Shown here one piece after another: positions 14,931 to 35,289 of a stretch of 64,000 nt of DNA. The notes under the pieces are model-generated. The model saw only the letters and a list, made by a program, of their open reading frames with translations. It had not been told where the DNA came from and ran no database searches. Both the position numbers and the translations under genes were made by a program. Within the stretch, counting starts at the first letter, position 1. Every line of letters starts with the position of its first letter. Source of the DNA: Marsupella aquatica (taxonomy: Eukaryota; Plantae; Marchantiophyta); assembly GCA_973895155.1 (NCBI GenBank), contig OZ316898.1, positions 4,464,480 to 4,528,479 on the forward strand, given 5' to 3'.

Positions 14931-15736
14931 TGGTCTGGTCAGGGGCAAATCTTTCCCGTCTGCCGTGTTTTGTTGGTTCTCCCTGCCCCTGCCCCTCTTT
15001 GAAGAGCGTTTCTGTGCTTATTAGATACTTTATAACTTTGTGACCTTTTAAACAGAGTCGAAGATTATCAGATACTTTGTGACTTTGTGTTGAAATGATT
15101 CACTCTCTTGTCATCAGAGATATTTCGTCGATGGGACCCCAAAACGCAAAAGCTGGCTTCAGTGCTAGAAAGAGCTTGTTTTTTCTCACTTTTCGTAGCT
15201 TGGAGAAAGGAGGCCTTATCCCCCATTCAATCCTTGTTGTCTTCTTTGGAGAGTGGGTGTTTGTAGCACTATAAACAAGTTGCACATTCACTATGCTTTG
15301 TAGGGCGGAGTGTTGGTTTTACAGTCTCTATATATAAATTCCTCTTTGTGACCGTCGTATACAATTTTGTCCAGAGCTAAATCAGGCTTCCCAATTTGCT
15401 GCTCTGGCTTTTTTGCCATTGTGGGGACTCTTAGGCTTTTTTGTTCTTCGGTCTTATAGTGGTTTTTCCCTTATGTCCTCCTCCCTTATTGGGTTTCATG
15501 TTTGCAATTCTGTGCGGTTTGGCACATTTTGTTATATCTCATGGCATGACCATGTCAAGGGTAAGGTGGACACATTAGAGCCTTCTCGTCCACCCATGAA
15601 GCCAGGAAATGAATTTGATTTGGCAACAAATGAGTTTTTGTGAATTTGTGAGCCAACAAAATAACCATATAGTATTGATGCGCAGTCTATATATATCACA
15701 CTGCCAATGAACAAAATCCACAAACTAGGAAACAAG

Positions 15737-16065
15737 ATGGCTAATCTGTATTCAACTTTCTCAGTGTCTCACTCTCAAACTGCTTTCATTCCATTCCATC
15801 CTGATATAATTATATCAATTTTGGCACATGCTCAGATTGAGTGTCAACCTCAATCATTTGAATCATTCCTGAAGCTTCATTTGAAGCTTCAAATCAAAGA
15901 AGTTGAGATGTTAAATATTTTTTACACCATTCCCTACCATTACTTCAGAATCTTATTTAAAGAAGATGAGAGAGACATTGCACAGTACTCAGACCTTTGA
16001 TATAGTGGTCAGGGGCTACAATTGATCAGCAATGCACTCTTCTGGATAAGACTACCAAAACTCAC
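15737..16065 (+). mobile_element. Decayed LINE ORF1-like fragment
   Basis: The translation ...HYFRILFKED...*...NALFWIRLPKL resembles the F-rich strand and WIRLP motif of plant L1 ORF1. It has an in-frame stop and is CpG-depleted. Confidence 0.35.
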
Positions 16066-16886
16066 TTCAAGCTGGACTAGCTTAATTATAACTCAAAACA
16101 AGAAATTTTGTTTCATAGCAATTAGTGTTAGTAATTTGAGAACAGAGAAATTTGGGCTTTACTCAAGAATTAGTGTTTTCTCTGTTCTCAAATTACTATT
16201 TTGAGAAATTGACAACTTAGTATGAATTTAGACTCAAGAGCACCAACTTGTTACTAACACTTAAACAAGAGTGGAATTGTTTTTAAACACCAACTGCTTT
16301 GGACTCTGGATCACTTTCACCAAATTAGTGTAAACACTAATTTTGTAGTAACAAACACTAATTTTGTAGTAACACCAGTTCTTGCATAACAGTAATTAGG
16401 AGTGAACAATGTGAATTGATTGATGGGAAGGTGGGCTTAGGTGACTGACAAGACAAGGCAAATGACCAGATGTGCTAGATTTCTGAACAAATGTTCCACA
16501 TAAACCCAATCAGGTGCTTTCTTCACATCTTTATTGTGGATGAGAGTTTGATTAGCTGTAAGAAACTTGAACATCTTCAAGTCAGGATGTGCTTGCAAAC
16601 ATTTTTATTGTAGCAAAAATTTGCTGGATTCCACCTCACTGAAAAGTCTTTGCCACTTCTTCTCTTCCATTACCCAGTTTCCCACCTAGCCGTAGACCCA
16701 TTAGCTAGAAGCTGGCAGTTATCCTTAAACCTAGGGCGATCAGAAATTCATCTAAGAATTATTAGATATGGAATATTTTTAGCATCTTCTGAAGGTGGCA
16801 TATGCCACCCAATAAAGAAAAGAAAGACCTTAAGAATTGGTGACTCAATCAAGTCACCTGTAGAAGGTATTAAAGAGCTGCGAAAG

Positions 16887-17582
16887 TTACCAGTTAATGG
16901 GCCAGTCAATGGCCCACTTCTTAGTGGGCAAAATCTCTGGACAAATTTCCCAAGTTTTCACAGGAGGGTCAAACATGTGTGGATGATTAGGGTACATGCT
17001 TGGTCGCAATTGATGCAGAGTGATAAACCAAGCGCATGTCTCCGAATCTTTGAAATTAACTATTTCCTCTGCAAGACCATGCATCCCCTGCAACTCTTTC
17101 ATTGACAGCTTCTTGTCCTTGGTCAAGAAATGGTCGTTGTTGTAGGCCAGCGGGATGTGAGCATGCTCAAGATTGACAGGGTATACCTCCATGTTGAGCT
17201 GCTTACCCATCTCATAACGAAATTCCTTGACGCAATACTCATATCGATTGGTCTTCACCCCACGATTGCTGTAGGTCAGTTTGAGAGGAATTCCAAGAAA
17301 TCCATCTCGAGCAGAAGTCAGATCAACAGGGTTAGGCTTCTTGACATCTGGACGGTTGTAAGGTGCAAATTTCTTCACAGCCAGATCCAAAAGATACCCA
17401 ACATCCTCAGCCGATTGCTCGTTGCCCTTTGCTATCACCTGAGTCATGTCACAGTGTGGAGGGAACATTGCACCTTCATGCAATCCATAATAAGATAATG
17501 AAGCAAGCAAATATTTTTCTATAGTTTTGTAGAATTTGGATTTGTAATGTGGCTCCAGGTAAACAACCAATTGAGGTCGCAT
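16887..17582 (-). CDS. Stand-alone 2H phosphoesterase-superfamily protein, UBASH3/Sts-1-like, with degenerate HxS/T motifs
   Basis: Intact 231-aa intronless ORF with the pattern LVVYLEP...MFPPHCDMT...FLGI...HAHIPLAY...LAEEIVN...CAWFITLH. This parallels the UBASH3-type 2H domain as I recall it (YVLYLRP...IFPHITL...FIGL...LHVTLAY...LAQNID...CDW). TATA-like TATAAAG at 17772-17766; in-frame stop 5 codons upstream of the ATG. Confidence 0.7.
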   Translation of the reverse strand: MRPQLVVYLEPHYKSKFYKTIEKYLLASLSYYGLHEGAMFPPHCDMTQVIAKGNEQSAEDVGYLLDLAVKKFAPYNRPDVKKPNPVDLTSARDGFLGIPLKLTYSNRGVKTNRYEYCVKEFRYEMGKQLNMEVYPVNLEHAHIPLAYNNDHFLTKDKKLSMKELQGMHGLAEEIVNFKDSETCAWFITLHQLRPSMYPNHPHMFDPPVKTWEICPEILPTKKWAIDWPINW

Positions 17583-18934
17583 GCTGGATAGAGTTTAGGG
17601 ATTTTCCTGGATATTGGAAATGGTGGTGACTACTATAAAACTCCCCATTCTATGTCAGATGGCAGTTTACCCCCTGCAGCTCATGTAAGGTTGCTTATCA
17701 GTGTCAATCTAAGACACCCCACGGACATCACAGCTGTGTTCTTTGTTTATTGCGCCAGGCCTGCCCTTTATACAATTGTGACAGATTTAGGCAGATTTCA
17801 GCTTTGAACTAAGGAGTGATTCTAAATCAACAATCAACTGGGGTTAATTTGGCCAATTTTTTTTCATGTGCTCCATTGCAAGGGGCAGAAAAGTAAGAGC
17901 ACCATGTCTTACTTTGATATTAATCTTGGAACCTGCCCGAAAGTCCAATCGATATGACCCCCAAATGTACCCAGTTTGCATTGCTTGTACCATGACCTTT
18001 GAAGATTAGTGCAGTGTCTGAAATCTTGTGCTACCCGGGCTTGTACACAATCTCTAATAGTGTGTTAAGATTGGAATCTAATTAGTAAGATTCAAGACTG
18101 AATTAACATTGATATTATTGGAGTTCAACAAACAAACAAACAAACAAACAAAGAGCTGGTTGGTTGTCCTAAATACAAAGCTGGATGGCATTGTTTGCCT
18201 GGCAGGGACCAATGGCAGAGCAGAGCATTTCAGGGCAATAAAGACAGACTTAGATGTAGCTTGAAGAGAATTTGAGATGTGACCTGAGCATTTCAGGCAG
18301 TTGATATGGCCTACCCAGCAATCTTTTGAAGCCATTACAATAAAGGATACTACTCCATCATCAGAAAAGGATTGATACACACCATAAGTCAGCCAGAAGA
18401 AACTTAGGATGACAGGAACTCATGCCAAATTAGTACCTTTCAGATTTTGCTAGTAAACCCTGTATCTAGTTTTCAAGGCCACAAAATTTTCATACCTTCT
18501 ACTAAAATTCGCAAAATAAAATTGTAGAAATCATTGACTTGAAACATGCAATCTGGACAAGACTGTAAGAAGCAGCACTAAATCTTTAGTGGGTAAGAAA
18601 TTCAAAGTAGATAGTAGAAGTCACCAGGCAAATGGAAACTCTCCATTTACAATGAGAAAAGAAGTCAATTAGGAAGATCTGAAGAGGCAGGGTAGACCAT
18701 TTGTGTGATAAGGTCATTCTACACTGACTCTGAATCAATGTTAGAGGCAATATTTCATGAGACTAGATTTTCATGATCAATTGTGCTGTGTCCTGCTTTA
18801 GACACTTAGGCCGGTGCAGCCCACAGTATCTCTAGTATCACTAGCTACAATTGCAGGTCACGAAGGTTAGGTTCATATAGCAGGTTCATTGGCTAGTTTT
18901 TAGAGATAATTATTTTATTTTTAATTTGTATTAG

Positions 18935-19140
18935 GGGAGTCTCTTCATGTTTTTTCTGACTTTTTAAATGTAGACAGAACCCCATTAAACTTGTTACTTA
19001 TTTCAGTTTGAAGTGGGTTTCTAGGGGCTTCAGGTTACATTATAATTATGCAGCTCTAATTTGACAATAGACTTCCAATGCTTCTGTTTGCTACAATTAG
19101 TAAATCAACCTGCTAAAATTTTGACTTCCTTTTTATAGAA
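18935..19140. repeat. Dispersed AT-rich repeat (second copy at about 23650-23850)
   Basis: ggagtct...tagacagaa.ccc...ttatttca...ctctaat...ttgac.tcc is shared between the two loci. Confidence 0.55.
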
Positions 19141-20620
19141 GCTATGTGACCTGCACAAAGTGAACATTTTCAATTGTTATTATCCCCTTCATCATCTGCT
19201 GTAAGTTGTGATCTGTCCTATGTAGGTTTTTTCTTTGTTTAATTATCCATGTGAAGTTGGTGCTTTGAATAGGTATATTCGTATGTCTCCCAATCATGTA
19301 CAATTAGTCCAATATGTAAGCTTGTTTTATTGACCTATTTGCAGCCATGAAGAGTTACACATTGGAAATAGATAGATGAGAAGACAAAGATTAAATTAAG
19401 TATTCTAGATGAAATGAATTTTAAAGGTAGTTAGCACATTTCATTGAAGACAAATAGGAGTACATTCATGGTAATATGAAAGGTAATTCTCCATGCAAAA
19501 ATTTTCCCTTAGTACCTTTATGTCTATAAAATACATGTAACATTTTCATATGGTTCATGAAAGATATTATTTTGTCCATAGTAGTTGAAAGGTCACATAG
19601 TCCCTTGGTATTCCTTTACCAATAGTAGTTATGGTGTTTCTTACCTTTGTTTGTTATTCCTCTATCCAGAGTGGTTTCTTAAGTTACCTTGGTAAATGTT
19701 AGAGAAGTTGAAAATTTTATTGGGTTTCTTATGTTACCTTGGTAAATGTTTGAGTAGTTCAAGAGTTTCTTCTACTTGTCATTACTTTGAAAATGTGTAA
19801 ATTAAATTGAAAATTGAAACAGATTACCAGAAAACACTGATATATCAATCATAGCTCATCCTACTACTATTTTCTTTCACCCCTATTTTTCCCTTTTCTT
19901 TGTTAACTTGAAATGTTACTTTTCATTTTCCCATTGTTTTTACAATTACAAAGCCTAACTGTTTTTCTTTGCCTTGCCTCAAACACGAATAGTCAAATTT
20001 GGCTCTTCTTGCACAACTTACGGTTCTTGTTTGTGAAAAATCATGTTGATGTGGCTACACGTGCATCCAGGAATTTTGGAAGTGACTTCCCATGTGGGTC
20101 GTAAAGAGTTGTTAGTCAAATTTGTAAACCCCTTTTACAAATATTATTTGTGTTTTATCTTATGTTTCAAGTAACCCTTTTAAATCAAATGTTTGATTTC
20201 CCTCATTAATCATTTATGTTCCCATCTGAAATTGACACAAGATGAGCAAGACCCTCAATAAAATTGTTGAATAACCATGCACACCTTTGTATATTATGGA
20301 CCCTGGTTGTTGAAAGTGTATTATATTTACTCACATAATAATCATCAATTGTTAGCATTAATAATTATATGTCCATAGACAATTAACTGTCCACGGACCT
20401 AGTTCCCCCTTTCTTTCATTCATGAAGGGCAATCTCAAGGCTCATTAAGAGCCTGCCCCCTTCACATTTTTTTTGGAATTTTCCTTAGCATGAATGATAC
20501 TCACTTTTTGGGTGGGGTGAATGTTAAAACACACATTCAGGAACACAGGTTTGGAACCCAGGGGCTCCCACTCCCCAATGAGCTGTGTGCCAGTGAACCT
20601 TTCCCCAATTTATGTGAACA

Positions 20621-22003
20621 CTAGCTCAATACCTGTGCGTTGCACAAAAGAAGTCGTGTCGGCTTAAGATGTTGTTGAGAAAAAAAAGATGTCGTGTCGG
20701 CCAAGAGGTCGTTGAGAGAAAAGATGTCTTGTCGGCCAAGAGGTTGTGGAGAGAAAAGATGTCATGTCGGCCAAGAGGTCGTTGAGAGAAAAGAAATCGT
20801 TGAGAAAAAAGATGTCGTGTTGGCCAAGAGGTCGTTGAAAAAAAAGTTGTCATGTCGGCCAAGATGTCGTTGAAAAAAAGATATTGTCTCGGCAAAGACA
20901 TCATTGAGGGAAAAGATGTCGTGTCAGCCAAGACATTGTTGAGGGAAAATACCCGTGCATTGCACAAAAAATGTCGTTAAGAAAAAAGATGTTGTGTCGC
21001 CCAAAATGTCATTAAAATAAAGATATCATGGCGCCCAAGATATTGTTAAGAAAACAGATGTTGCGCGTCCAAGATGTAGTGTCCCCCAAGATGTTGCTAA
21101 GAGGAAAGTGTTGTGGCGCCCAAAATGCTCTTAAGAGAATTATATATTGTGTTTCCCAAGAATGATGTTCTTATGTGAGATGTCATGGAATAAAAATATG
21201 TTGTTAAGAAAAATAAGTCATTTTGCCAAAGATGGCATGTTGCCCAAAAGGTCATCAAGTAAAAAATTGTGTCAAGTAAGTAGATGTCATGCCGGCAATG
21301 ATATCGTTATGCCAAAAATGTCGTTAAGTATTAAGATATTGTTAAGTACAAAATGGTCAATAGATAAAGTATGTCATTACTCAAAGATGTTGTGAAGTAA
21401 AAGATGTTGTTAAGTACATCTTGGGCCTGATACCTGTGCATTGCACAAATGATGCATGTTAAGGTGAGAAAATATATCAAGGTGAGAAAAGATGTCCATA
21501 AGAGAAAAACATTTCGAGCTGAGAAAAATATGTCAAAGAGAGAAAAGATGGTAAGGTGAGAAAAAGATGTCACATTAGAGAAGAACATTCTGAGGTGAGA
21601 AAAATATGTCAAGGAGAGAAAAGATGGTGAGATGAGAAAAAGATGACAGGATGAAAAGAAATGTTGAGGGTGAAGAAAGATGGCCAGGTGAGATAAAGAT
21701 GGCCAGGTGAGAAAAATATGGCAAAATGAGACAAATATAATATATATGTCGAGGTGAGAAAAGATCTCAAGGTGAGCAAAGATCTTGAGGTGAGAAGATC
21801 TTAATATGAAGAAAAGATGTCAAGATGAGAAAATATTTTATCTCTATTTTATTTATATTTGAAATTATTTCAAAAAAATTAGAATTATTTATATATAAAT
21901 AAATTTAATTAAATTTTGATTAAATTTTTCATTGTGGCAGGTATGGGAAAGTTAAAGGGTAACTTGGGCAGGAACTTATTTTTAGAAGGGGTGTATGGAT
22001 AGA
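20621..22003 (-). mobile_element. Non-autonomous Helitron-like element filled with minisatellite
   Basis: On the minus strand ...tgtgcaacgcacaggtattgagCTAG|t (3' end at 20621) gives a short hairpin followed by CTAG and T, the canonical Helitron 3' end. The hairpin recurs at 20951 and 21432. The interior is about 36-bp (aagatgtcgtgtcggccaagaggtcgttgagagaa) and about 20-bp (gtgagaaaagatgtcaag) repeats. The candidate 5' a|TC end at 22003 is tentative. Confidence 0.6.
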
Positions 22004-32370: not shown

Positions 32371-35289
32371 ATGTTGTATACGACGGCCACGGAGATGGAG
32401 GAGCCCGAGTCGACACCGATGGAAGAGGACGAGGCTGCGGTGGAGGTGAGGCACGCGTTTGAGAGCCGCCACGATATCGACCACGGTCAACCCCCGGATT
32501 GCCTCCTGGCTAGCACGAGCGGGAGAGAGCGGGGAGCGACGGAGCGGATCGACAACAGCAGCAATCATCAAGGAGGGGCATTGCGCTCTGCTGATGAGGC
32601 TCACAACCCGTCGTTGCATCCGCAGAGGCTGGTGGCAGAGGTTTCTCAAAGAGAAGCTGGAGGAGGAGGAGGAGGGGTTTCTGATAGGGCGGTGGTCTCT
32701 CAACGGGACAGGGATCATTGCAGGAGGATTAGCAGCTGCACAATCAGGGGGAGTAGATCGAGAAGCTGTGCTAGCAGGGGAGACGACGACGGAAGAGGCA
32801 CGTCGAAACGAGACAAGCATGACCTCGGGCGGTCGTTCCAGCTGGCCGTGAGCGCCCACGACTGGGCGCTGGCAGAGAGTTTCATTTCGTTGGCTGATCC
32901 CCAGCGCCTAAACGATTTATTGTGCATTGCGTTGGATTCCGTTTGGTTCTTGAGCACCACGCAGGAACTTGCGGCTGCCAGAAGGCTCATCGAAAAACTC
33001 ATCCAAGCAGGGGCTTCGGATTTCACCAGGGCGGCCCTCCGGACTTCCTTCTTGGCATCGTGTGTCTCTGCCTGTAGGAGCCGGACCATGAGCCTTGCCG
33101 ATACCGTCACCGTCATGGCTCAGAGGTAATTGTCATCTCCACCGATATCGTCTCGGTTTTACCTCATGGGGACTTTAAGCCATCATCTGAATCTGCCCAT
33201 CACGGGCTTGCTGTTTCCAACTCCTTTAATTATTTGCATTGAGGAAAATAGGGGTTCAATTATCATATTCAATGGATTTCCTGCCTTCTCAGGCATATAG
33301 CAAAGAGGTGGAAACAGCAGCGTAGCTTCAATATATGTCCTTCAGCAGGACAGTTTCCTGGGAGGGCAATTTCTTAGAGAGAGGCTTTCAATTCTAACTC
33401 TTGTTCAAACCTACTTAGGATTGCTGAATTGTTTGGAAACTGTGTTGCACGGTATGCTTATGACCAGCTTCTGTCTTAGTATATGTCTTTCCCTCGTTGT
33501 ATTTCACTGTGTTCAAGACTAATGGATTGGACACCCTATCGTGCAAATAGGTTGCGAGAGAGGCTTCAAGAGTGCAACGGTGACGAGGTGTTGAAAGCTG
33601 AGGCTGCTGCCAAGGTTCAGAGATTTACGGAGTGGGCGCTCAAGTGTATAGGATCACATTCACGAGGACGTTGTAAAGGGGAGGCAGAGTGCAGCACCGG
33701 TGTGGTGCAGAGCTCAGCAATTGAGTCCAGGCTGCAGTTGATGGCTTTCAAACGCTTTTTGGAATTGGCTGGAACGCGCCTGACTGGCAAGGACTACACC
33801 GAGGCATTTGATGCTGCTTGTTTTCCTTTAACCTTATTTTCGAGTGCCATTGATCCTGGATGGGCGACAGGCATTGCCGCGAGCGCGATGCAGGGGCTAT
33901 TGGGGTTGTTGGTGGAAGGAGGCGCTGACAATGTGAATCAGTGTTTCTTAGAAGCGGCTCGGTTTGGGAGCACGGAGCTGGTGCGAATCTTATTGCAGGT
34001 GAGACTCTCAATCTTGTTGAATGCCTATCTGCTCCCTCTGCGTTTTTCTCTCATCACAGATGTCTTGATTCCTGCATGTAGCCCCTCGAGAAACCCTGGA
34101 TGCTCATCGTCAGGTGCTTCATCCATACCTCGTTCATTTGCTATCTCGTTGGACGGTCAATTTTCTTCTAGTCTCGTAGCACGCGTGACGATTGGGAAGC
34201 TGTTCTCTTCCTATCCTTCGAGTGCTCTGCATGTTCTGAGACAAATGGCCATCGGTTTTTTTAATGAATTCCCATGTTGACGAGTGTGAGTATGAAACGG
34301 CGATCCAGCTTGTTGAGTTGAATGTTTCGACCTATCTTTGGCAGTTTCTCTTTGATTTGGACCGAATTGGTTCCTTAGGTCACATTTGAAATCTGCGGTT
34401 GCAAGGAAACAGTCCCTGGTATGCTACCTCGACATCATCTCATGGTTGGCTCTTTTGCTTGGGCATTTTGCAGATTGCTCATAGCAATGGGGTGGAGCTA
34501 GATGCGGACTTGGCATTGGGTTTTGCTTCTCACTACTGCAAAATTAGCACAATGGAGTGCTTAGTTGATGAGGGGAATGCAGAGGCTTTCCTGGGCCCGC
34601 TCATGAGAGCTGCAGAGCGAGGTTGCATGGAAGTGGTGCAATGGTTTGTGGAGAGGGGCTGCAGGGACATGGAGCTGTGTCTAGCGTTGACAGCTGCAGC
34701 CTCAAGCAGCCGAGTTGACATAGCCGACTATCTACTGAGCCATGTACCACGTCATGTTCTCCAAACCCTTAGTGCAGAAATCCTAAAGGCAGCCGGAGAA
34801 AGGAGTGGCGGATCGCTGAAGGGTATTGCGTTCCTCTTACAGGCCGACTTTTTGAATAATCCTGAGGCAACTTACAGAATTGCCGATGGCATTGCAAAAT
34901 CAGAAGATGAAGCAGTCACTCCAGAGTTACGCTCGTTTTTGCAAGAGGAATGGTCGGAAGAGGCATTCCTAAGGGGTAGGATGCTGGGTCAGGCGCATCA
35001 TCTTAATGTCATGAGGGCTCTCAAGAGAGGGTGTTCACCCCTCCATCTACAAGAGCTCCCTCTTCAACTACAGGTTACTGTGGCTTACTTGCCCTTGTAC
35101 AAGGAGTGCTCAGCAGCAAGGGGTGTAATTCTATCACAATGGCTTAGAGGGCAATTAGTAGAGGCAGCTGTCCGACTTTGTGCGGGTCCAAAGGCTCCCT
35201 CTGAGGAGACAATTGTGAAGTCCAGCAAGGCAGCATTGCTTACTATATTGGAGTCACGTCTGCCAGGGTTTTTGCTCACCCGTGTGTAA
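32371..35289 (+). CDS. SKIP35: Ankyrin repeat protein, SKIP35-like (3 exons, about 672 aa)
   Basis: join(32371..33125,33551..33998,34474..35289) = 2019 nt with canonical splice sites; alternative start at 32395. Family motifs: FQLAVSAHDWALAESFI, LCIALDSVWFL, DFTRAALRTSFLASCVSAC, GADNVNQCFLEAARFGSTELVRILLQIA, FLGPLMRAAERGC, AAGERSGGSL. Confidence 0.92.

Follow-up and report, generated by a model that had tools for sequence, protein, structure and literature searches.

What does an intact gene for a 2H phosphoesterase-like protein do in a liverwort chromosome, and how did it get there? These questions are raised by a 64,000-nucleotide stretch of Marsupella aquatica DNA (contig OZ316898.1, positions 4,464,480 to 4,528,479; hereafter the window), which carries a complete open reading frame (ORF) of 231 codons at 16887-17582 on its reverse strand. 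The original prediction, made from the letters of the window, described a stand-alone, intronless gene of the UBASH3/Sts-1 type, acquired from a fungal or cyanobacterial partner and altered in its catalytic motifs. The reading we favor, at a probability of about 60%, is that of an ancient transfer from a fungus-like source to a liverwort ancestor, followed by loss of canonical 2H catalysis and retention of the product as a non-catalytic, probably binding, protein.

Fold, motifs, and constraint

The predicted 231-amino acid, intronless ORF is present in the window, and no second ORF of at least 170 amino acids accompanies it in the first 30 kb. It can be aligned end to end with the 230-231-amino acid orthologues P0001, P0002, P0033, and P0004, and its product is a single-domain protein, as expected of a stand-alone gene. 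The two histidine motifs, PPHCDMT and AHIPLAY, which had been placed about 100 residues apart, are separated by 99 residues (His43 to His142).

An AF2 model of the window protein, built with 14 homologues, had a pLDDT of 81 and a pTM of 0.81. The top Foldseek matches to this model were all 2H proteins (Arabidopsis cyclic phosphodiesterase (CPDase), LigT, AKAP18, Usb1, ASCC1, and viral phosphodiesterases (PDEs)), with a probability of 1.00. When VIA-align was used, the best match was 1vdx (Z 12.7, 179 residues aligned, root mean square deviation (rmsd) 3.8), followed by 5h7e and 2d4g (YjcG, rmsd 3.3) at Z 12.5 and by 1jh6 at Z 11.8; ranks 1-37 were 2H proteins throughout, after which Z dropped to ∼3 at rank 38, rat CNPase, itself also a 2H protein. 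A model of the fungal homologue P0006 (25 sequences, pLDDT 94) returned the same structural list with YjcG first (Z 12.4); each of the 50 entries listed belonged to the 2H superfamily. The two-lobed, pseudo-symmetric α/β fold that characterizes this superfamily spans residues 1-215 of the modeled window protein. The proposed 2H fold is thus established at the level of predicted structure. Sequence and profile searches of Pfam, NCBIfam, and the Protein Data Bank (PDB) gave no significant match for the window protein or its relatives; against Pfam the window protein matched nothing even at E up to 10, and one weak alignment to Usb1 that pairs both motifs was non-significant (E 0.28).

The signature of the superfamily is Hh(S/T)h (PMC10218301), and the fungal and bacterial homologues described below carry it at both aligned positions. 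Motif 1 is H-[CV]-[ST]-[MV]-T in each of the 19 members that are from fungi or of fungal type, as well as in the bacterial protein; motif 2 is H-[IM]-S-L-A-Y in all fungal members and HLSLAY in the bacterium. The window protein conforms to the signature at neither position (H-C-D-M and H-I-P-L). Motif 1 reads H-C-D-M-T in all five full-length liverwort-type proteins and H-C-E in a remnant from Riccia sorocarpa. Motif 2 of the liverwort-type proteins is x-[I/L]-P-L, and the position of the second histidine is occupied by His in the window protein and P0033, by Tyr in P0002 and the Calypogeia fissa protein, and by Asn in P0004. Since the protein departs from the motif rule while sharing the fold and homology of the superfamily, it is a 2H member by descent and predicted fold, not by catalytic signature. 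The replacement of both Ser/Thr positions (HCD, HIP) had been read correctly from the single sequence; the comparison identifies it as a derived, liverwort-wide state in which the second histidine is unconstrained.

Column statistics found fixed differences between liverwort and fungal members at residues 144 (Ser to Pro), 190 (Tyr to His), and 37 (Ala to Gly), and residues common to both groups at H43, T47, L145, Y147, W185, H202, and F204. Conservation among the liverwort proteins peaks in residues 25-47, a stretch that ends in motif 1 and in which 8-9 of 9 positions are invariant as against 40% overall; conservation of the motif 2 region within liverworts is only average. At the C terminus, the fungal sequences stop near an aligned R-W, which one alignment sets on K222-W223 of the window protein, and most of the liverwort tail has no fungal counterpart. 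This tail is kept even in P0004, which is 49% identical to the window protein and has all of the liverwort-specific features, and the AF2 model has low confidence over its last residues.

A dN/dS ratio near 1, together with a lack of expression, had been named in advance as a sign that the gene has no function. The ratios observed by the Nei-Gojobori method were 0.13 for the window gene and its C. fissa orthologue (dS 0.55), 0.10 for the window gene and the copy on Logan contig L002 (dS 0.85), and 0.09 for C. fissa and L002 (dS 1.0). From these ratios, we conclude that purifying selection on the gene is strong in Jungermanniopsida; in Riccia the gene has decayed. The motif changes indicate that the two-histidine reaction is most likely no longer performed.

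Relatives and age of the gene

A phmmer search of 1.84 billion cluster representatives returned only eight proteins at E ≤0.001, all of them liverwort or early-diverging fungal. The liverwort-type matches were an orthologue from C. fissa (88% identical, recorded as an “unnamed protein product”), the full-length, 231-amino acid P0004 from a Logan contig (49% identical), and an 86-amino acid fragment from R. sorocarpa. The fungal matches, all hypothetical proteins with at most 37% identity to the window protein, were from Funneliformis (Glomeromycota; E 4.4e-10), Smittium/Furculomyces (Kickxellomycotina), and the Entomophthorales Conidiobolus (E 1.2e-07), Neoconidiobolus, and Entomophthora, with further E values of 2.3e-06 and 9.3e-04. 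A word-indexed search added the 84% identical orthologue P0002 and the metagenomic P0003/P0033. The first word-seeded profile search gave no new members; profile searching added Massospora, Amoeboaphelidium (Aphelida), and the Mucorales Phascolomyces, Circinella, Zychaea, and Absidia, with profile matches at E 1e-14 to 1e-82. Homology to the fungal family, which is marked by PHCSMTGFF and HISLAY, extends over the full length of the window protein, and Y, P, H, T, L, Y, and W residues are invariant across the joint alignment. The suggested relatives in early-diverging fungi were thus found in Glomeromycota, Mucorales, Entomophthorales, Kickxellomycotina, and Aphelida.

In prokaryotes, 185,579 genomes were scanned by pattern, and a single relative emerged, in the Acidimicrobiales metagenome-assembled genome MCMED-G02. 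Its ORF (L007:2950-3504) encodes 184 amino acids, and its motifs, KYPPHCSMTGFF and HLSLAY, are of the fungal type. A metagenome scan added five marine contigs of this Acidimicrobiales type (L009-L013; TARA and others) and one fungal-type soil contig; the marine bacterial version is 184-190 amino acids long. The bacterial protein missed E 0.001 in phmmer, where the fungal proteins score far better, and the narrow bacterial spread may itself reflect an inter-domain transfer. The bacterial gene adjoins an ORF for a GntR-like regulator and a large membrane/ankyrin ORF. The cyanobacterial relatives named in the original prediction did not turn up in any search, a weak negative because the prokaryote scan was limited to the pattern [HP]PHC[SD]MT.., and the only bacterial kin belong to the marine Acidimicrobiales lineage. 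Scans of phages (by tblastn) and viral contigs gave no relative. These data define an unnamed family of stand-alone 2H proteins, without a Pfam model, in early-diverging fungi and one marine actinobacterial lineage.

Beyond the liverworts, the matches included no plant in any search and no alga in the exhaustive one, a result based on protein databases, a derived single-sequence query, and a word-seeded profile search. The R. sorocarpa copy (CM100795.1, L006:6001-6343), from a member of Marchantiopsida, is a frameshifted and truncated pseudogene in which residues 1-70 are encoded in frame 1 and residues 70-114 in frame 2, with none further; it is annotated as the 86-amino acid hypothetical protein R1sor_009412. 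This pseudogene and the 49% identical P0004 place the gene before the Marchantiopsida-Jungermanniopsida split, if it was acquired once. The proposal that the gene is “maintained or recent” therefore holds in its first half, given the dN/dS of ∼0.1; the second is wrong, since the Calypogeia orthologue, the 49% relative, and the Riccia pseudogene make the gene old, and its composition is host-like.

Origin and function of the gene

The gene is physically integrated in the host chromosome, and contamination is not its source. In organism A, Logan contigs matched 15200-19400 exactly, spanning the ORF and both flanks. Contigs from organism B, in two further studies, contained the same locus with 1-3% differences in ORF and flanks alike; the covered part of the ORF had five substitutions, two of them amino acid-changing, and no indel. 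These bridging contigs, which answer the check on the flanks that had been proposed with gene and flanks carried together in two organisms and three studies, are joined by the plant genes within the window, the position of the C. fissa copy on a 15-Mb scaffold, and the host-like composition of the ORF in identifying a genuine host locus.

A tree of 25 rows and 212 columns (LG+C20+F+G4) placed the liverwort proteins in a clade with 100/100 support and a long stem (1.39), inside a polytomy that it forms with the fungal clades; a very long branch of 3.5 changes per column leads to the bacterial row. Because the family is broad in early-diverging fungi, narrow in bacteria, and present in one plant lineage, an ancient horizontal acquisition from a fungus-like donor is the most economical reading and the most likely one. 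This distribution is patchy in the manner expected of a transfer, within the limits of the protein databases and of search sensitivity. Several points weigh against it. The best tree gives the liverworts Glomeromycota as their sister group, but at a support of only 38/68; a topology in which the fungal rows form one group loses 2.9 log-likelihood units without being rejected (p-AU 0.22); and plant copies that lack annotation or have diverged strongly may have escaped the searches. Of the transfer from a fungal or cyanobacterial partner that had been claimed, the transfer itself is supported by the distribution; nesting of the liverworts within fungi lacks support in the tree, and no cyanobacterial kin was found. 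Improbable, in our view, is an origin outside the fungi, whether by vertical descent from an early eukaryote with loss in the other Archaeplastida or from a bacterial or unsampled donor. The polytomy and the same p-AU of 0.22 would allow it, bacterial members with canonical motifs exist, and ESM Atlas features of the protein lie nearest to generic 2H and bacterial (Chloroflexota) clusters, which is a lead only. However, the exhaustive search matched no other plant or alga, the fungal proteins outscore the bacterial one (which lies above E 0.001 and on its branch of 3.5 changes per column), the family is widespread in fungi and narrow in bacteria, and vertical descent would require many independent losses. 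That the ORF is a neutral leftover decaying among repeats, or entered the assembly as a fungal contaminant, has very little probability left. The gene-poor, repeat-bearing flanks and the Riccia pseudogene are what such a reading would lead one to expect, but it is already contradicted by the data: dN/dS stays at ∼0.1 over dS of 0.55-1.0, five sequences, one of them only 49% identical, retain an intact ORF, both its 5′ and 3′ flanks are conserved, contigs from two organisms and three studies span the gene and its plant flanks, plant genes lie in the window, and the best fungal identity is ≤37%.

On the reading that we favor, the gene descends from a family of stand-alone 2H phosphoesterases with the canonical motifs PHCSMTGFF ... 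HISLAY, and a liverwort ancestor most likely acquired it from a fungus-like donor before Marchantiopsida and Jungermanniopsida split. In the liverwort lineage, Asp has since taken the place of the phosphate-binding Ser in motif 1 and Pro that of the Ser in motif 2, the second catalytic histidine has been freed from constraint, H35, G37, and H190 have arisen as new invariant residues, and a Trp-rich tail has been added at the C terminus. The product is predicted to be a cytosolic-type protein without an N-terminal extension and with a two-lobed 2H fold. Its two-histidine transesterification is most likely gone, and it is probably a non-catalytic module in which the conserved motif 1 half of the cleft binds a ligand or partner. 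Precedents are the AKAP18 central domain and the kinetoplastid mitoribosomal 2H-fold proteins among the structural matches, in which the fold serves for binding or as a structural subunit and not for known catalysis. In support of a loss of catalysis, the 2H function of Sts-1 needs both histidines (PMC10218301, PMC10253181); counting against it, both histidines of the original pair, H43 and H142, are still in the window protein, which would allow residual or altered activity. That the protein is still an enzyme, with a site rebuilt from H43 together with H35, H190, or H202, or with an H-x-D metal site, and acting on another phosphoester or substrate, is unlikely. H43, C44, and T47 are invariant in the best conserved stretch of the protein (residues 25-47), H190 is invariant in five of five liverwort proteins at a position where the fungi have a nearly invariant Tyr, H202 is invariant family-wide, and strong purifying selection suits catalysis as well as binding. 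On the other hand, both H-h-S/T-h motifs are needed by all characterised 2H enzymes (PMC10218301), an Asp in the position of the phosphate-binding Ser should repel phosphate, and the second histidine varies freely among His, Tyr, and Asn in close orthologues. We consider it doubtful that the site has been rebuilt by a move of the second histidine to H190 or H35, with Asp in place of Ser, so that the protein carries out a novel chemistry or serves as the receptor of a cyclic or 2′-5′-linked nucleotide signal, in a gene that came from an ancestor of the Glomeromycota or Mucoromycota symbionts of early land plants and has been in leafy liverworts for ∼400 My.

Comparison with known systems supports assignment of the protein to the fungal family by descent. 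Its members, such as Funneliformis CAG8492495, Conidiobolus KXN72799, Entomophthora KAJ9080786, and Absidia repens BCR42DRAFT_456699, are uniformly uncharacterised “hypothetical proteins.” The liverwort proteins share with them homology over the whole length (phmmer E 4e-10 to 1e-3, 23-28% identity), the fold and the order of its elements, a Y-L-E-P start, H-C-x-M-T, the L-x-Y of motif 2, and a W and H-x-F near the C terminus. The two groups differ in that the fungal proteins keep H-x-S/T in both motifs, whereas the liverwort proteins have H-C-D, x-x-P, and a variable second histidine, and alone have invariant H35, G37, and H190 and the Trp-rich tail.

The likeness to UBASH3/Sts-1 (TULA-2), the type named in the original prediction, lies in the shared 2H fold. 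The published PDE domain of Sts-1 comprises residues 87-255, with 126-HITL and 212-HVTL at a spacing of ∼86, and has YjcG as its nearest solved structure. The motif spacing of the compact fungal members (83-89, as against 99 in the window protein) and their top structural match to YjcG (Z 12.4) agree with these data but do not discriminate, since LigT and CPDase lie within 1 Z unit. The window protein differs from UBASH3/Sts-1 in its degenerate motifs and in its architecture, which includes no UBA, SH3, or histidine-phosphatase domain, and UBASH3 sequences were absent from the phmmer and profile matches (profile length window ≤712 amino acids) and from the PDB searches. The blocks around both motifs of human UBASH3 presumably resemble those of the fungal family, which is a lead and not a test. 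The analysis yielded no link to 2′,3′-cNMP or TIR signaling, which the original prediction had raised as a speculation.

Plant CPDase (the Arabidopsis Appr>p cyclic phosphodiesterase, 1fsi/1jh6, PF07823) and proteins of the LigT/YjcG type have the same fold (Z 11-12.7, 165-179 residues aligned) but are only 10-15% identical to the window protein, which lacks their catalytic Ser/Thr. The gathering threshold of PF07823 was not reached, one of 25 family members, a fungal protein, giving a sub-threshold match (E 0.005; 17 bits, where 21 are required). The 5′-AMP-binding central domain of AKAP7/AKAP18 and the structural 2H proteins of kinetoplastid mitochondrial ribosomes are structural matches at Z 10-11 without a detectable sequence relationship, and they serve as functional analogies only. 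AKAP18 retains its H-x-T motifs.

The host locus and what the family means

The coordinates of the gene, its motifs and flanks, and the surrounding features are collected in Table 1. A BLASTN comparison of the window with C. fissa found a common stretch consisting only of the ORF with ∼125 nt on its 5′ side and ∼50 nt on its 3′ side. The upstream flank contains conserved blocks common to three species. The putative TATA-like box, TATAAAG, lies at the predicted distance of 190 nt from the ATG, and a TATA-like string is found in C. fissa at the aligned columns. Logan contigs L002-L004, from three runs of one study, have a common first base 127 nt before the ATG and different 3′ ends, and their start coincides with the boundary at which upstream conservation between species begins. 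This shared start could mark the start of transcription if the runs are RNA; the contigs are not counted as transcripts. Downstream, the hairpin GGTGACT..AGTCACC lies ∼30 nt past the stop codon, with its stem kept in the window, C. fissa, and L002 and its loop variable; the indels of organism B in this hairpin are confined to the loop. The hairpin may be an element of the 3′ untranslated region (UTR) or a protein-binding palindrome.

Table 1. Features of the window, with positions counted from its first nucleotide
Feature	Position	Strand	Remarks
Complete intronless coding sequence, protein of predicted 2H fold	16887..17582	-	231 codons + stop, ATG start; from ORF list
Motif 1, H43-C-D-M-T (in PPHCDMT)	17442..17456	-	First 2H His retained, Asp in Ser/Thr place
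Motif 2, H142-I-P-L-A-Y (in AHIPLAY)	17142..17159	-	Pro in Ser place, His varies among orthologues
C-terminal tail, residues 205-231	16890..16970	-	P-x-KKW-x-x-DWP conserved; largely liverwort-specific
TATA-like box, TATAAAG (putative)	17772-17766	-	190 nt upstream of ATG; read from sequence
Conserved upstream flank; probably 5′ UTR plus core promoter	17583..17707	-	BLASTN match to C. fissa locus ends at 17707
Conserved 3′ flank with 7-bp-stem hairpin/palindrome	16838..16886	-	GGTGACT..AGTCACC at 16839-16858
Short dispersed repeats	16328-16468, 16610-16750, 19289-19400		10- to 100-fold excess contig depth in four of four runs
Degenerate tandem arrays	20646-21077, 21456-21833		Periods ∼35 nt and ∼19/76 nt; downstream of gene
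Ankyrin-repeat protein	34399-35289	+	Long single-exon ORF
mTERF, 688 amino acids	39349-41415	+	Long single-exon ORF
Cpn60/TCP-1 chaperonin, 541 amino acids	47261-48886	-	Long single-exon ORF
GT47 exostosin, 425 amino acids	62614-63891	-	Long single-exon ORF

The ORF contains exactly 14 CpG dinucleotides (observed/expected ratio 0.42) and the neighboring 1-2 kb are poor in them (0.09-0.15), as had been noticed at the outset. The contrast is one with the immediate flanks only, because the ratio averages 0.59 across the window and 68% of segments of the ORF's size equal or exceed its CpG count. Both the CpG ratio of the ORF and its GC content at third codon positions (0.48) lie within the span shown by the host genes of the window; its composition is thus host-like, and the CpG pattern is no sign of recency.

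The flanks of the ORF are gene-poor and AT-rich, with tandem arrays and short repeats that are multi-copy by read depth. Some contigs from elsewhere in the genome link ∼16652 straight to ∼19314, with only 23-32 nt on the sides of the joint, so that the short repeats are pieces of one dispersed family flanking the gene. The description of the surroundings as transposon debris fits to the extent that the flanks are gene-poor and repeat-bearing, but the flanking ORFs that were tested contained no domain of a transposon protein. A search for a carrier mobile element gave weak inverted repeats only, and no further copy of the gene was found within the window. Among the neighboring genes, the mTERF, Cpn60/TCP-1, GT47, and ankyrin ORFs encode ordinary plant proteins, and several GC-rich ORFs at 30.8-34.3 kb had no Pfam match.

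Based on the above results, this gene would add a case to the growing list of fungus-to-bryophyte transfers, one that is old, single-copy, and intronless, and that has decayed in one lineage while being strongly constrained in another. It also reveals a 2H phosphoesterase family that lies outside the Pfam and NCBIfam models and is spread over early-diverging fungi. This fungal and liverwort family may be the stand-alone counterpart of the PDE domain of animal UBASH3/Sts, in which case the natural substrate of that domain might be found with the help of a simple member from a fungus or a liverwort. Finally, the liverwort proteins would represent a natural experiment in the passage from a two-histidine enzyme to a pseudoenzyme, in which both Ser/Thr residues were lost, one histidine was freed, and the first half-site was frozen.

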